Sequence record: MT612988.1
DNA: 64,000 nucleotides
Direction: 5' to 3' (one strand)
Shown piece by piece: positions 4,727 through 27,655 of the stretch; within the stretch, counting starts at the first letter, position 1; each line of letters begins with the position of its first letter. The notes under the pieces are model-generated. The model worked only from the letters and a program-made list of their open reading frames with translations. It ran no database searches and had not been told where the DNA came from. The position numbers and the translations under genes were made by a program.

Positions 4727-6355
4727 ATGATTGGATTTCAACAATTAAATGAAAACATGAGCGCAACGTACGACTATTATCCGGCTCGCTCGACCAAAGA
4801 AAACAAATTCTTTGTGATCGACATGAAAGGCGAAGCCAGAGACATCGTTGTTTCGTTCACAACTAAAACAAAATCAGATATCGGAAATCGCGGTAAACGT
4901 TCTTGGTTCTGTACTGTATCAGCAATGCGCGGCAAAAAAGGCGGTGTTACTATTCGTGAAATGGGAGATGAACAAAAGCTTCAACAAACTATTGTTAAAG
5001 TGGTTCAAGATTTCATGATCAAACGTCGTGCGAATGTCGTTTCAATGCGTGTGCAGAAACTAGGTACGGGTAAGATGTTCGACTTGCGCGTTAAAACGTT
5101 GTTTAAAAAGCTACGTTACGGCTGTGATACAACTAAGATTATTGGCGTGGGTGGTGAAGAAATTTCGCAAGATTACAGCTTCTTTATTGTAACCAAACCA
5201 GGGTATAATGCCGATAAGCTATTCGAAGCATCTGAAGAAACAATTAACGATATTGCGTTAAAAATGTCACTCGAAACTGATATTTCAAGCAAGAAAACGA
5301 TTATCGTAACTGCCGATGCTGCGTATGACGACTATGAAGATGACGTACTAGGTAAATGGGTAGAAGAAAACCCCGCTGCACGTGTTCCAAATGATGTTCT
5401 TCAAATGCCTCAATATGAAGCGCGTGTAAGTTCGTCTGTTCGTTCTCAATTGAATGAAAGCAATGAACATGTTCTTGCTAATGCTGCGAAAGGTTTAATT
5501 GATATGAGTTTGAATCTTGAAACTGTGGCAGTTTCATTGAATTCATATATCGCCGAATCGAAGAAGCCTCAAAGCGTTCTGAATAGTATCATGGAATCTC
5601 GCTCACGTGCTCATGCAAGTCAGTATGAACGTCTTTCTTTGCAACTTATGCAGGAAGATTCATTTGCGGGTCTATCGTCACTTACACAAGCGGCTATTGC
5701 TAGATACTCCGCGACTCGTTTTTCATGGAAGGTGAATGAAGAGTTATTACACGGAACTGGTGTTGATAAAGAATCACAGATTGTCTCACGCATCGACCAA
5801 GCGTTTTCTGAAGCTGGTATGATTGCTGGTGGAATGACGTTATATCGTGGCTGTGAAATGTCAAGTAAACATGTGCGCTCTATTCTTGAATCTGGCTCGT
5901 TTGTTTCGACTGCGTTTATCTCAACGTCAATCGACCCTCTTGTTGCTTGTAAGTTCGTTGAATCAAGCTCTAAGAACATCATTGATTCAACTGCTAAGAA
6001 TAGTAAATCAGATATGCGTTCTCTGCTTGAGTCAGATAAGAAAATGAATGTTGTATTCATCATAGAAGCGAGCGGCTTGCCTGTTTTAGCTTCAGGTAAA
6101 CACGGTATGAAAGACTCAAAAGAGATTATCATCAACCGTAATACGATGTTTGAAGCTGACGTTGTTCAAATGTCTGAATACGACGCTGTAATTCGATTGA
6201 AAATCAAAGAAGATACGAAGCAAGGTGTATTGTCTGCTTTCAAAAAGCAAGACCGTTTACACGAGCTTTCAGAAGTAGCTAATTTCATGCGTTCTGTTGA
6301 TGTAGATGTCGATGCAGATAGACTAACAAAAGAGCGTAGTCCTCTAACACCATGA
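4727..6355 (+). CDS. Alt-like ADP-ribosyltransferase (R-S-E class), probably virion-packaged
   Basis: C-terminal LYRG (R374), FISTSID (S399-T-S401) and SKEIIINRN (E466); N-terminus MIGFQQLNE; late promoter. Confidence 0.75.
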   Translation: MIGFQQLNENMSATYDYYPARSTKENKFFVIDMKGEARDIVVSFTTKTKSDIGNRGKRSWFCTVSAMRGKKGGVTIREMGDEQKLQQTIVKVVQDFMIKRRANVVSMRVQKLGTGKMFDLRVKTLFKKLRYGCDTTKIIGVGGEEISQDYSFFIVTKPGYNADKLFEASEETINDIALKMSLETDISSKKTIIVTADAAYDDYEDDVLGKWVEENPAARVPNDVLQMPQYEARVSSSVRSQLNESNEHVLANAAKGLIDMSLNLETVAVSLNSYIAESKKPQSVLNSIMESRSRAHASQYERLSLQLMQEDSFAGLSSLTQAAIARYSATRFSWKVNEELLHGTGVDKESQIVSRIDQAFSEAGMIAGGMTLYRGCEMSSKHVRSILESGSFVSTAFISTSIDPLVACKFVESSSKNIIDSTAKNSKSDMRSLLESDKKMNVVFIIEASGLPVLASGKHGMKDSKEIIINRNTMFEADVVQMSEYDAVIRLKIKEDTKQGVLSAFKKQDRLHELSEVANFMRSVDVDVDADRLTKERSPLTP

Positions 6356-24301: not shown

Positions 24302-25359
24302 TAAATTTTCTTCCATCTGTTAAGTCGATTTGTAGCCATTAGACCGCTAACGGCATTTTCATAAATGTATTGCTGAATGAACTCAGCAGATACACCAGCT
24401 TTGACAAAATCATTGATGTCTTTCTTATCAATAATTTGAGGTGGGAGCTTATCCCAAATAACAACACGCTCACCCGCTCTGATTAGAACTTGAAGACGCT
24501 TTACAACGTCTGGGTGGCGAGGCTCATTATCAAGCGCCCAAATGCGATTCCCCGCATAGGGTGCATTTTGTGGACTGACTTGTCCACCTACTATAGCACA
24601 GCAATTGTAGAGGAATAAACTATCAATCGGGCCCTCAACGAAAATAACAGGGTCATCTTCATTGATACGCTCTGTGCCGTATATCTTGTTGAAATCGTCG
24701 TCAATTTTAATGGTCATGTATCGTTGAGCATGTTTGTTTGTCAACGCACGACCTTGAACAGCAATCAAACCTTCTTTGTTATAGATAGGTATTACCAATC
24801 GAGGGTGGTCATTTCTAATCTCACCTTCGTACAAATCTGGGCGAAGCGTCTTAGCCATTTGAGACCAGCCACGAGTAAACCCAAGCAAATGCCACTTGTC
24901 TTTAGGGATTTTTCTAGATTCGAGGTATTTGTGCATCACATGACCATCTTTAAGGGCAGTGATATTATAGAAAAGTTGCTCTTCTTGTTCTTTCTCAACG
25001 ACAGTCGCTTCTTTCTTTTCAACGACTGGTTCAGGTTCGCGTTCTTTACGCTCACGAGAATTGCGCTCTTTGAATAACTCGACGCGATACTGAGAAAACA
25101 ACGATGGTTCGTGATCTTTCAAAAAAGTATACAGCGATTCGTTATAGTCACAGTTCCAGCAACTACAACGTAAATGAATCTCACCAGAACGTGTCTTAAC
25201 TTCATTAATCCAGAAACGTGTCTTGTACTTGTTCTTTTTCGAGTCACCACAAATCGGGCATCTTGCATTGATTTTGAATGGACGATGACTATGCACCGTA
25301 GGGAGTAGTAATCGATGCTGAAGCATCTTGGCGTATTGTATATCAATCAATATTTGCAT
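24301..25359 (-). CDS. 61: DNA primase gp61
   Basis: RCPICGDS...CWNC zinc finger, QGRAL, VEGPIDSLF, DNEPRH, KDIND. Confidence 0.96.
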   Translation of the reverse strand: MQILIDIQYAKMLQHRLLLPTVHSHRPFKINARCPICGDSKKNKYKTRFWINEVKTRSGEIHLRCSCWNCDYNESLYTFLKDHEPSLFSQYRVELFKERNSRERKEREPEPVVEKKEATVVEKEQEEQLFYNITALKDGHVMHKYLESRKIPKDKWHLLGFTRGWSQMAKTLRPDLYEGEIRNDHPRLVIPIYNKEGLIAVQGRALTNKHAQRYMTIKIDDDFNKIYGTERINEDDPVIFVEGPIDSLFLYNCCAIVGGQVSPQNAPYAGNRIWALDNEPRHPDVVKRLQVLIRAGERVVIWDKLPPQIIDKKDINDFVKAGVSAEFIQQYIYENAVSGLMATNRLNRWKKI

Positions 25360-25379
25360 AATTCAACCTCCGTGTAGTG

Positions 25380-25408
25380 ATTATACACGGCATCACGATA
25401 CGATAAAC
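25380..25408 (-). promoter_or_regulatory. GTTTAT-17-TATAAT promoter for primase
   Basis: -35 at 25403-25408, -10 at 25380-25385, GGAGG SD. Confidence 0.7.
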
Positions 25409-25410
25409 AT

Positions 25411-25432
25411 AAAAAAGCCCCGTTTCCGAGGC
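25411..25432 (-). terminator. Terminator of the late 3-gene operon
   Basis: gcctcg-gaaa-cggggc followed by T6. Confidence 0.8.
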
Positions 25433-25438
25433 GTTTTA

Positions 25439-25918
25439 TTATTCGAAATGTCTGAACTTCTTCAGCTTTTTCTTTTTCTTTTTCTTACCGATAGTTTCAG
25501 GACCTGCATTAGTTACAGCACCAGTCGTTTCACCAGAAGCAATCGACTCTGGTGAGCTACTACCGTCACCCGCATCACCTGCAACAACAGCTTCTTCGAC
25601 TCGAATACACTCTTTCGCGAAATCTTCAGATAACCCGTATTCTTTTGCAAGCTCAATCAGCAACAAATAAGACGCGCCATAATCAAGTGCTGTTTTACCA
25701 CCTGGTAATGCACCAACCATGCGCTTGATATTTCTCACAGTAACATGAAACATCGTCCAGTTACTTTTCTCTTGTGCAGTTACAGGGTCACGCAACTTCT
25801 TACCATCTGCGTCGATGATACCCATTCGATATGCTTCCCAACGTTCAAAACGAAGATGAAGCAAACGAGACAGACGAAGAGCATAAAAACCATCTGCACC
25901 ACGTTTAGCTACACTCAT
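25439..25918 (-). CDS. gp61.1-family protein with C-terminal gp23 N-arm-like segment and poly-Lys tail
   Basis: FYALRL...WEAYRMGIIDADG...TMFH...RNIKR recalled from the T4-like 61.1 family; adjacent to gp61. Confidence 0.7.
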   Translation of the reverse strand: MSVAKRGADGFYALRLSRLLHLRFERWEAYRMGIIDADGKKLRDPVTAQEKSNWTMFHVTVRNIKRMVGALPGGKTALDYGASYLLLIELAKEYGLSEDFAKECIRVEEAVVAGDAGDGSSSPESIASGETTGAVTNAGPETIGKKKKKKKLKKFRHFE

Positions 25919-26742
25919 TATGCCCCCAAGATTTGCTCAAGTTGACGATCAAAGATCTTCTCTGCTTCATCAAGTGGTAATGGTACGCTGCGCATGAATT
26001 CGTGCAGATTATCTTCGCGAATCAGATTTTCAATAGTACTAGATGGTACTTTGTTCTTGACTTCAACGATCTCGAATCGTGTTCCACCTACACGTAGGAA
26101 GTGACGACCTAGACGGCGATACTCAGCTACTTTGTTCGCTTCTACAAATGCAAACACGCGAGTGATACCTTTTTGAATCATAGTCTCTACTTCAGCAAAC
26201 ATCACGCCTTTCGGTGCAACATCGACATCAGAGAACGATTCAAATAATTCAACGCGCTCTTGAAGTGATAAAACCTTGTTCTGAGCCTCAGGTACAAACA
26301 CTTTACCAACAGCACCAACGTGTTCACACGCTTCAGATAATGTTTTAGTCAATTCTTTATGACCAACTGAAGGAATGCTTGAATCCACGTCCATGATACA
26401 CGCAGCGTCAATCGCACACTCATTCACAACGGTTTCATGTTCGAAGAAATCTTTTTCCGAAACGACAAATAGACCCTCATCAAGTTTAGCTGCAATTGCT
26501 TCAGCTTCTTGTTGTTGTTTCTTCATCGTTGCTTCTTCTTTTTCAGCAGCAGATTCTTTGTCAAACATGGTGATTTTGCCGCGAATTGCGTCTCGAACAC
26601 GAATGTCCATCATCGGTGTGATGTTCGCCCCGAGTTCTTTTTTCTTTTGCGTATATAGTTTCTCGATTTCAACTACACCGTCTTTGGTAGTACATTGGTG
26701 AACCGACGCAATAAGTTCTTCCAATTTATCTTTGATAGCCAT
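25918..26742 (-). CDS. UvsW.1-like domain fused to a degenerate cytidylyltransferase-like domain
   Basis: IASVHQCTTKDGVVEIEKLY...DIRVRDAIRGK versus T4 UvsW.1; C-terminal PSVGHKEL and SSTIENL...EFMRSVP. Confidence 0.55.
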   Translation of the reverse strand: MAIKDKLEELIASVHQCTTKDGVVEIEKLYTQKKKELGANITPMMDIRVRDAIRGKITMFDKESAAEKEEATMKKQQQEAEAIAAKLDEGLFVVSEKDFFEHETVVNECAIDAACIMDVDSSIPSVGHKELTKTLSEACEHVGAVGKVFVPEAQNKVLSLQERVELFESFSDVDVAPKGVMFAEVETMIQKGITRVFAFVEANKVAEYRRLGRHFLRVGGTRFEIVEVKNKVPSSTIENLIREDNLHEFMRSVPLPLDEAEKIFDRQLEQILGA

Positions 26743-26745
26743 TAG

Positions 26746-27591
26746 CTACTCCTCGTAAACAATCGTATTTTTAGTAATTCTTGATTCGAATACAACTTCA
26801 ACACGTACACCATAAGGCAATGCCTTAGAACGGCGACATGCATCATTTCTAATCAACATATACGGGTGATATACAGTATCTTTAATATCTTTCGCGTTCA
26901 ACAAAACATCACCGTTAATATGCAAGGTACCGCGTTTGAATACAAAATCATCTAGTGTAAAGCTATTGACTACAACAAGACCGTTATTGAGAATGTCTGA
27001 ACCAAATACAACATGATTTATTTCGTCGTCTCGTAGTCTGCGTGCGATTGGCTGGCTAAGTCTCTTCACTTTACCATCGTCAGAATAGTCCGATAATGTA
27101 ACCATCTTCTTGACTATCATTTGTGATAAAAGCTTACGAGCTTCAGTGCCGTGAATAACGTCAGTACTAGCCCAACGCTCGGCATTTGATTTTTTAATCG
27201 AAATCGGAAAATCGCCGCTTACGGTCTTCAATACCATATCGGCTTTTTTGTTGTTTTTTGTGTCGTGACCAGTCATTTCAATCGACTGAACACCTTTTAT
27301 TACTCGTCGACCAATTTTAATCCGAGTACAGCCAGAATCAATGTGTTGCTTTACAATATTATAGAAATTGCGTTCATTCTCGATGCCCGGATTAGATGTT
27401 GGTTTGACGTATACTCTGCATTTTTCCATCTGTATACAACCAATTGAACTGCCTGGGTCGCACTTCTTGTACGTCCCGTCAAGCTCTTTCGCAAGTTTAA
27501 CAATTAGACCAAGTCGATTTTCATCTGTGTAGATAACGATCTTTCGGCTATTGATAATTCTCGCGTCATATCTTAACAAAACATCTATCAT
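26746..27591 (-). CDS. PD-(D/E)xK nuclease-like late protein
   Basis: ENERNF...KADMVL...PISIKK pattern; late promoter and RBS-occluding hairpin upstream. Confidence 0.5.
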   Translation of the reverse strand: MIDVLLRYDARIINSRKIVIYTDENRLGLIVKLAKELDGTYKKCDPGSSIGCIQMEKCRVYVKPTSNPGIENERNFYNIVKQHIDSGCTRIKIGRRVIKGVQSIEMTGHDTKNNKKADMVLKTVSGDFPISIKKSNAERWASTDVIHGTEARKLLSQMIVKKMVTLSDYSDDGKVKRLSQPIARRLRDDEINHVVFGSDILNNGLVVVNSFTLDDFVFKRGTLHINGDVLLNAKDIKDTVYHPYMLIRNDACRRSKALPYGVRVEVVFESRITKNTIVYEE

Positions 27592-27593
27592 AG

Positions 27594-27642
27594 TGCATGA
27601 ACACCATCTTTAATACCATACCAGTATTTAGATGTTCATGCA
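27594..27642 (-). promoter_or_regulatory. Late promoter TCTAAATA (27625-27632) inside an RBS-sequestering hairpin
   Basis: Perfect 10-bp arms tgcatgaaca (27594-27603) and tgttcatgca (27633-27642), plus inner pairing. Confidence 0.8.
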
Positions 27643-27655
27643 GATAGACTACCAC

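Follow-up and report, generated by a model that had tools for sequence, protein, structure and literature searches.

The stretch of DNA considered here (the window) comprises 64,000 nucleotides of sequence record MT612988.1, and its source is a KVP40-type, T4-like Vibrio phage. The segment from 25439 to 27642 contains three genes, named P1, P2 and P3, which are read from the minus strand and are followed by the primase gene (gene 61). Judging from the sequence, these genes are likely to form a conserved late operon that is built around the pan-T4-like late gene 61.1 and whose first ribosome-binding site is gated by RNA structure. RNAs that read through from the upstream nrdG and phosphoesterase genes would carry a whole hairpin, and initiation at P1 would be blocked. 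A gp55-type late polymerase would start a few bases past the motif TCTAAATA and produce an RNA without the 5' arm of this hairpin, from which P1 would be translated; translation of P2 and P3 would then follow by coupling to P1. The anatomy of the operon and its late gating are well supported by the sequence and by comparison with relatives.

Organization of the operon

The operon and its borders consist of the following elements.

27583–27649, minus strand: predicted RNA hairpin of 19 pairs (outer stem, 27649–27643 with 27589–27583; inner stem, 27642–27631 with 27605–27594)
27625–27632, minus strand: T4-type late-promoter motif TCTAAATA, 33 nt 5' of the P1 ATG, overlapping the 3' end of the hairpin 5' arm
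26746–27591, minus strand: P1 open reading frame (ORF), 281 amino acids, homologue of KVP40.0017
25918–26742, minus strand: P2 ORF, 274 amino acids, KVP40.0018
25439–25918, minus strand: P3 ORF, 159 amino acids, KVP40.0019, gp61.1 homologue
25411–25432, minus strand: intrinsic terminator (6-pair stem, 25432–25417; GAAA loop; T-run) between the operon and the primase gene

P1 and P2 are separated by a 3-nt gap (TAG cta ATG), and P2 and P3 overlap by 1 nt (TAATG). The Shine-Dalgarno sequences of P2 and P3 (GAGGAG or GGGGG) are each located within the preceding gene. The operon is limited by TCTAAATA at its 5' end and by the GAAA-loop terminator at its 3' end, with the primase gene next, and it lies within the uvsX-40-41...61 replication cluster. 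An initial annotation, made from the letters alone, had listed these ORFs, junctions, promoter, hairpin and terminator together with a promoter-like site of the primase gene, and every one of them is present where it had been placed. Its proposal of a single co-regulated late unit is backed by the promoter, the gating hairpin, the coupled junctions and the terminator.

Over the operon, the window is 100% identical to phages R10Z and R11Z, 99.7–99.9% identical to VH7D, ValKK3 and phi-ST2, and 86% identical to KVP40. The gene order P1-P2-P3-primase is kept in 49 Vibrio phage records, and it is also found in the divergent phage D479 and in metagenomic relatives, with identity down to 49%. The position of the terminator is kept in KVP40, nt-1, F86, 1.081.O, D479 and L012, where the stems differ in sequence yet stay complementary through compensatory changes. 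This conservation suggests that the terminator is a real boundary before primase.

Late promoter and gating hairpin

The 8-mer TCTAAATA occurs 8 times in the window, against 2.8 occurrences expected, and none of 100 shuffled sequences reached 8. The sites are intergenic, and two of them lie directly 3' of terminators. The motif also stands 5' of the tail-tube gene and of a gene for a gp34-like proximal tail fibre. The canonical motif TATAAATA is found in the window 5' of gp23 and 5' of the UvsW-like helicase gene. At the P1 leader, TCTAAATA is unchanged in six relatives. Because it is enriched, intergenic and located 5' of the tail-tube and gp34-like genes, TCTAAATA is accepted as a credible late-promoter variant of this phage on sequence grounds.

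The hairpin at 27649–27583 encloses this motif, and the first two bases of the motif are the end of the 5' arm. Its predicted folding energy is -25.3 kcal/mol (z -3.6). The 3' arm covers the GGUG Shine-Dalgarno-like bases of P1, and the outer stem pairs the G of the P1 AUG and the following codons. An RNA beginning at about 27619, a few bases past the motif, has a predicted energy of -7.1 kcal/mol (z -0.4) and no significant structure. These predictions suggest that the operon is probably hairpin-gated and translated only late in infection.

Equivalent hairpins, with z from -3.1 to -8.2, are predicted in KVP40, F86, 1.081.O, L012, L013, L014 and D479, and in these seven relatives the promoter motif likewise lies within or abuts the 5' arm. 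The element itself is conserved in KVP40, nt-1 and F86. The hairpin of 1.081.O has one compensatory change (C:G to U:A) and one wobble change (A:U to G:U). In L012, where P1 is 57% identical, a ten-pair stem of unrelated sequence again has a 5' arm ending in TCTAAATA (z -8.2). The stem of L014 differs in sequence and contains the motif CCTAAATA, and D479 has a nine-pair stem over the Shine-Dalgarno sequence and AUG immediately 3' of GATAAATA.

A similar arrangement is known in T4, where the late RNAs of the lysozyme gene (e) and of I-TevI lack the 5' strand of an inhibitory structure (PMC3014915). The genes e, segB and ipI-III of T4 are classed as having early RNA and late protein (PMC9697503 supplement). 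In gene e and I-TevI, as in the window, the late promoter overlaps or adjoins the 5' strand of a hairpin in which the ribosome site is sequestered, so that longer early RNAs would be silent and late RNAs without this strand would be translated. The window hairpin, which is predicted from sequence, differs in that it heads a three-gene operon, uses TCTAAATA and places the P1 start codon in the internal loop that separates its stems.

P3 is a gp61.1 homologue with a gp23-like tail

P3 matches phrog_2086 with an E value of 1.6e-53 over residues 1–153, and it also matches phrog_1823. A tblastn search with P3 found gp61.1 homologues in 655 phage records. The protein was listed in 2006 as a conserved ORF without assigned function upstream of primase (PMC1524935). 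Like T4 gp61.1 and the members of PHROG 2086 and 1823, P3 is encoded upstream of gene 61 and has the shared conserved tail motif, and it is a full-length member. It is composed of an N-terminal domain of about 105 residues and a gp23-like tail that ends in a lysine run. The gp23-like segment is located as follows (the slash marks the cleavage site).

25475–25600, minus strand: gp23-like segment of P3, residues 107–148, with the V-E-E/A site, about 35 N-arm-like residues and the start of the lysine run

The V-E-E/A site aligns with the L-N-E/A prohead-protease site of gp23, and the next 35 or so residues resemble the N-arm of mature gp23. By BLASTP, residues 107–148 of P3 are 50% identical to residues 60–98 of the own-type gp23 (E 3e-8). 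Comparison of the gp61.1 and gp23 families with hhalign gave a probability of 97% and an E value of 8.5e-11. The sole match of the gp61.1 profile in the PDB is gp23 (E 4.5e-5), and in the reverse search the gp23 of the window phage matches both gp61.1 PHROGs. The agreement of these searches upholds the earlier description of P3 as an N-arm mimic. Beyond about 10 residues before the cleavage site, family hhalign found no homology between the gp61.1 N-domain and the gp23 delta domain.

Conservation within gp61.1 is highest in the tail, which is also the sole part kept in T4. An aliphatic-x-Glu site three residues before a conserved V-A-G-D is present in 13 of 13 aligned gp61.1 sequences, and its Glu is conserved in at least 90%. 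T4 gp61.1 has 54 residues, made up of a 10-residue leader and the 44-residue tail. The leader (MKTFKEFIKE) is identical at 8 of 10 positions to that of the T4 internal proteins IPII and IPIII (MKTYQEFIAE), the capsid targeting sequence of these proteins. T4 gp61.1 is also like the internal proteins IPI-III in its I-x-E cleavage motif, and the aliphatic-x-Glu site is a likeness to them common to all gp61.1 proteins. In contrast, the long forms of gp61.1, including P3, have an N-domain of 100 residues in place of the 10-residue leader of T4. A gp21-type prohead protease is encoded by the window phage.

In other lineages, gp61.1 also looks like an insulated late gene. In Ah1 it is preceded by a terminator and then CATAAATA, in Ac42 it is preceded by GATAAATA, and in both phages a terminator stands before primase. 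In these Aeromonas and Acinetobacter phages it is a single-gene unit, whereas P3 is the third gene of a longer late operon.

In the likeliest reading of P3, gp61.1 would enter or contact proheads and be cut there. A head or packaging function is plausible for gp61.1 alone. A fuller version, which we hold only tentatively, is that gp61.1 may be an unrecognised head component of T4-like phages, in which the capsid N-arm is copied into a protein of its own. Its N-domain (in T4 the leader that resembles a capsid-targeting sequence) would bring it to the prohead, where the prohead protease would cut it within the gp23-like segment, at the cleavage site. The tail would then remain part of the shell, where it might, for example, fill N-arm positions that are vacant around the portal or the gp24 vertices, and its lysine run would contact DNA. 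The KVP40-type phages would produce gp61.1 along with a late nuclease and a UvsW.1 protein.

P3 was also considered as a Gp23 major capsid protein (PF07068). This was rejected, as only about 45 residues are similar, P3 has 159 amino acids and it has no PF07068 match. The public labels 'major capsid protein', 'capsid vertex protein' and 'capsid protein' for gp61.1 (25439–25918) are mis-annotations.

The Pfam model of Gp23 also matches, over its first 30–90 positions only, further small ORFs in frames of 136–200 amino acids.

D479, 222621–222746 (L049): partial match to the Gp23 model
Merlin, 163767–163853 (L037): partial match to the Gp23 model
Ah1, 96890–97147 (L036): partial match to the Gp23 model

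These ORFs may encode further capsid-N-arm-like proteins other than gp61.1. At the gp23 locus of Ah1 (L029), the long frame begins only at the conserved M-G-L-V-R-R, and the N-terminal part lies in another frame or piece. This split could reflect an intron, the insertion of a homing gene or a sequencing problem.

P1 is a nuclease-like protein

P1 belongs to a family (phrog_12709, PHROG 12709) to which that database assigns no function. It has a small N-terminal alpha/beta domain (residues 1–66) and a predicted PD-(D/E)xK restriction-endonuclease-like domain (residues 67–270). The AlphaFold2 (AF2) model of P1 has a predicted local distance difference test (pLDDT) score of 90. Residues 67–270 match HhaI (Z 6.9), MspI (Z 6.7) and HinP1I (Z 5.9) over 146–170 residues, and Hjc, SwaI and I-Ssp6803I stand lower in the list of structural matches. 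HinP1I is also the top match in Foldseek (E 0.1), where the list consists mostly of PD-(D/E)xK enzymes. The sole family-level pointer comes from the Atlas neighbour cluster of P1, in which 14% of the members have the R-HINP1I family.

An alignment of 30 P1 sequences showed that E73, D118, S131, K133 and further motifs are invariant. In the model, E73 is on helix 68–85, D118 precedes strand 119–123, and S131-I-K133 closes strand 126–133. These are the expected places of nuclease motifs, so the term 'nuclease-like', already used in the initial annotation, is reasonable for the fold and motif, with modest scores. The (D/E)xK motif reads SxK in P1, with a polar residue at the acidic position. HinP1I carries QxK and MspI carries NxK at this motif. 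P1 differs from HinP1I, MspI and HhaI, the monomeric type II restriction endonucleases that are its best structural matches, in that it has no sequence-family match and no methyltransferase partner, carries an extra N-terminal domain and has a late promoter upstream. As modelled, P1 would probably cleave DNA as a Mg-dependent endonuclease whose structural type is that of HinP1I, MspI and HhaI.

Genes of the P1 family also occur in other phages. EniLVp02 carries one (hhalign E 1.5e-40). In cyanophage-like contigs, P1-family genes are found without P2 or P3, beside heme oxygenase and bilin reductase genes. Another is present in the Stenotrophomonas phage Moby, near a free-standing cytidylyltransferase-like gene. 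A TATAAATA-like motif without a hairpin is present upstream in 5 of 7 of these P1-family genes outside the operon. In Moby (L015, 4986–7193), the cytidylyltransferase-like protein (PF01467, E 8.9e-10) is encoded one gene after the P1 homologue, and this pairing echoes the combination of P1 and a nucleotidyltransferase fold of the window in an unrelated phage group.

P1 was considered as a replacement of endonuclease VII (Endo VII), and this was rejected on the ground that the near-identical genome has an Endonuclease_7 gene. In the whole records of EniLVp02 and Moby, a P1-family gene is present and no match to Endonuclease_7 (T4 gp49) was found; the window type has both. A weak Pfam and PDB match of P1 to ribosomal L18 was judged spurious, as the fold results point elsewhere. 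T4 gp61.2 has no similarity to P1 or P2. The DUF6267 protein of EniLVp02 was rejected as a P1 relative, the gene preceding it being the P1 homologue.

P2 is a fusion of UvsW.1 and a nucleotidyltransferase-like fold

P2 is composed of a UvsW.1 domain (about residues 1–70), a long helix (43–89) and a nucleotidyltransferase-like fold (113–271), and the initial annotation of P2 as such a fusion is confirmed by the family and fold matches that follow. Residues 14–69 match PF11637 with an E value of 2.5e-33 (114 bits against a cut-off of 25). The P2 family profile matches the structure of T4 UvsW.1 (2JPN) with an E value of 2.7e-11, and superposition of the P2 model on 2JPN gives Z 8.0 at 26% identity. 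The N-terminal 70 residues of P2 are thus a clear UvsW.1 domain. In contrast to T4 UvsW.1, this domain is not encoded downstream of uvsW, and it is joined through the long helix to the nucleotidyltransferase-like domain. The window genome type has no free-standing UvsW.1, and no UvsW.1 domain other than that of P2 is present in the near-identical genome. About 21 kb separate P2 from the UvsW-like helicase gene, which is located 3' of TATAAATA.

The C-terminal part of P2 has only eleven relatives among 1.8 billion representatives, and the real ones are all UvsW.1 fusions of 260–300 residues. In the AF2 model of P2 (pLDDT 85.6), residues 113–271 adopt a nucleotidyltransferase fold of the HIGH type. 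The closest structures are a nicotinamide mononucleotide adenylyltransferase (NMNAT, 1F9A; Z 11.6 over 140 of 164 residues) and NadR (Z 11.2), and Foldseek matches phosphopantetheine adenylyltransferase (PPAT) with an E value of 8e-5 and a probability of 1.00. P2 shares with PPAT and with the adenylyltransferases of nicotinamide and nicotinic acid mononucleotide (PF01467) a Rossmann-like fold over about 140–150 residues (Z 10–11.6).

In contrast to these enzymes, most P2-family members lack the H/TxGH and ISSTxxR signatures or carry them in degenerate form. The window has P-S-V-G-H, and S-S-T without an Arg in register. Both signatures are intact in only two distant members of the family, and several members have another residue in place of the His. 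A match to PF01467 below the cut-off (E 4.8e-4) is given by one distant member. The conserved residues of the family lie elsewhere, around R210-F223. Because the catalytic signatures are degenerate, P2 was not filed as an active PF01467 member. As modelled, the fold is probably non-catalytic or altered and not a standard enzyme. The more probable target of P1 and P2 is late DNA that is being replicated or recombined, on which they would work together with the late helicase UvsW.

A weak Pfam match of P2 to UPF0102 was judged spurious, as the fold results point elsewhere, and Moby gp050 was rejected as a P2 relative, having no similarity. The labels 'DNA helicase' and 'ATP-dependent DNA helicase' that public records give to the UvsW.1 fusion (25918–26742) are transfer errors.

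Linkage and origin of the unit

Linkage was counted from hidden Markov model (HMM) searches of all fetched loci. The P2-type fusion is immediately followed by gp61.1 in 7 of 7 contigs, and a P1-family gene is upstream of the fusion in all 6 contigs where upstream sequence could be assessed. In EniLVp02 and L057 a DUF6267 gene stands between P1 and P2, and in L059 four small ORFs separate the two. The neighbour upstream of P1 is variable (phosphoesterase, RNase H and others). In T4, RB43, Ac42, Ah1 and Merlin, the gene for gp61.1 immediately precedes primase; phiN3 has one gene between the two. In most T4-like phages, gp61.1 occurs without P1 or P2.

As these sequences read, the gp61.1-primase pair is ancestral across the T4-like phages, and P1 and P2 are lineage-specific additions in marine lineages. 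The initial annotation had described three genes inserted before primase, which does not hold for gp61.1. From the linkage pattern and the variable neighbours, the unit appears to be a conserved neighbourhood of marine T4-like phages on the ancestral pair. The description of a self-contained module fits the linkage of P1, the fusion and gp61.1, but not the separate occurrence of P1 and of gp61.1. According to the same annotation, independent occurrence of the genes in relatives would speak against the module. P1 and gp61.1 do occur independently, so the module is contradicted in part, whereas the P2-type fusion was always found with gp61.1.

The DUF6267 protein of EniLVp02-type phages has 360–381 amino acids and is encoded between the P1 homologue and the UvsW.1 fusion (L011, 3871–4953; L057, 3853–4998). 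In L059, TATAAATA followed by a GC-rich hairpin with a T-run lies upstream of the fusion (4940–5000), in a promoter-then-terminator-like arrangement.

Points against the operon model and alternative explanations

Several observations weigh against a hairpin-gated late operon built around 61.1. The motif TCTAAATA differs from the canonical TATAAATA at position 2, and we infer the dependence of P2 and P3 translation on initiation at P1 from the gene junctions only. In T4, 61.1 RNA is classed as early and the gp61.1 protein was undetected (PMC9697503), and no TATAAATA was found near 61.1. The N-terminus of P3 resembles neither the T4 capsid-targeting leader nor the leader-like N-termini of the window phage itself. 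A literature search for gp61.1 in virion or head proteomics found no record, and a search for RNA runs containing the sequence of this stretch likewise gave none. A Pfam scan gave P1 no match to any nuclease family, including the PF11463 type, and the fold matches of P1 are modest (Foldseek E 0.1; Z below 8, a range that does not decide the fold).

In the initial annotation, the three products were read as a single module for head maturation or DNA packaging, in which the nuclease would process DNA ends and P2 and P3 would be partners inside the capsid. Such a module is unlikely. It would agree with one late unit with coupled junctions, with the constant linkage of P1, fusion and gp61.1, and with the capsid-protein cleavage site and N-arm of gp61.1. 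However, P1 is found alone in cyanophage-like contigs and Stenotrophomonas phages, gp61.1 is found alone in most T4-like phages, and DUF6267 or small ORFs split P1 from P2 in EniLVp02, L057 and L059. UvsW.1 normally accompanies the recombination helicase UvsW, which suggests recombination rather than heads, and capsid-targeting leaders and conserved protease sites are absent from both P1 and P2. P1 and P2 share their timing with gp61.1, and a shared function is not supported.

A second explanation places the whole unit in late DNA metabolism. P1 and P2 would be partners of UvsW in recombination-dependent replication, gp61.1 would be a modulator of primase, and the gp23-like tail of gp61.1 would be an evolutionary relic. 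The unit does lie inside the replication cluster, the adjacency of gp61.1 and primase is nearly universal, and uvsW is also late, with TATAAATA upstream in the window. This explanation is nevertheless doubtful, since a terminator separates gp61.1 from primase in the window phage, its relatives, Ah1 and Ac42, and since the supposed relic is the best-conserved part of gp61.1 and the only part retained in T4. Furthermore, the phage already has Endo VII.

A third explanation treats P1 as an endonuclease with a selfish or exclusion role, which would be homing-like or would have co-infecting phages or host DNA as its target. Gating would protect the phage early in infection, and P2 and P3 would be unrelated passengers. 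The gating design matches that of I-TevI (PMC3014915), the fold is restriction-enzyme-like without an adjacent methyltransferase, and the distribution of P1 over phage groups is patchy. Against this, the locus and the neighbours of P1 stay constant within gp41-gp61 intervals while its identity falls from 91% to about 30%, which would not be expected of mobile homing genes. Neither a target-site duplication nor a disrupted host gene was seen, and P1-family genes elsewhere have late-promoter-like motifs without a gating hairpin. We consider a selfish P1 improbable.

Quite improbable is the view of gp61.1 as a soluble mimic, which would act on the prohead protease or on a chaperone, as competing substrate or as regulator, or would be a decoy for a host defence that senses the capsid N-terminal region: it would explain why only the cleavage-site and N-arm segment is copied, why the phiN3 tail resembles the phage's own, different, gp23 arm (E 0.003) and why the T4 protein is undetected in the proteome (PMC9697503), but within Straboviridae the matching of tails to cognate gp23 arms lacks significance (p 0.20; a p of 0.023 is reached only when phiN3 is included) and the T4 leader resembles a capsid-targeting sequence, pointing into the head. 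A Gol decoy in particular is rejected, since the copied gp23 segment stops where the Gol region of T4 gp23 begins.

The primase leader

Beyond the terminator, the primase gene (phrog_47, E 1.5e-83) has its own leader.

25359–25390, minus strand: primase (gene 61) leader, with the extended -10-like sequence TGTATAAT at 25387–25380, GGAGG, and the ATG at 25359

A 7-bp inverted repeat (CCGTGTA ... TACACGG; 25370–25390, minus strand) spans TGTATAAT and ends at GGAGG. It is conserved in KVP40, nt-1, F86, 1.081.O and D479, and may act on gene 61 as a regulatory hairpin or an operator.

Implications

Of the ORFs conserved in T4-like phages, only a few still lack a function, and 61.1 and uvsW.1 belong to these (PMC1524935). 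The locus described here would assign both of them a regulatory class, namely late. The recurring labels 'major capsid protein' for gp61.1 and 'DNA helicase' for the UvsW.1 fusion are corrected. A marine phage lineage would join T4 in the use of the hairpin-gating design, and would use it for a whole operon. In addition, gp61.1 gains a concrete head-related hypothesis that is testable in T4 itself, where its 44-residue tail would be present in heads and would be cut by gp21.

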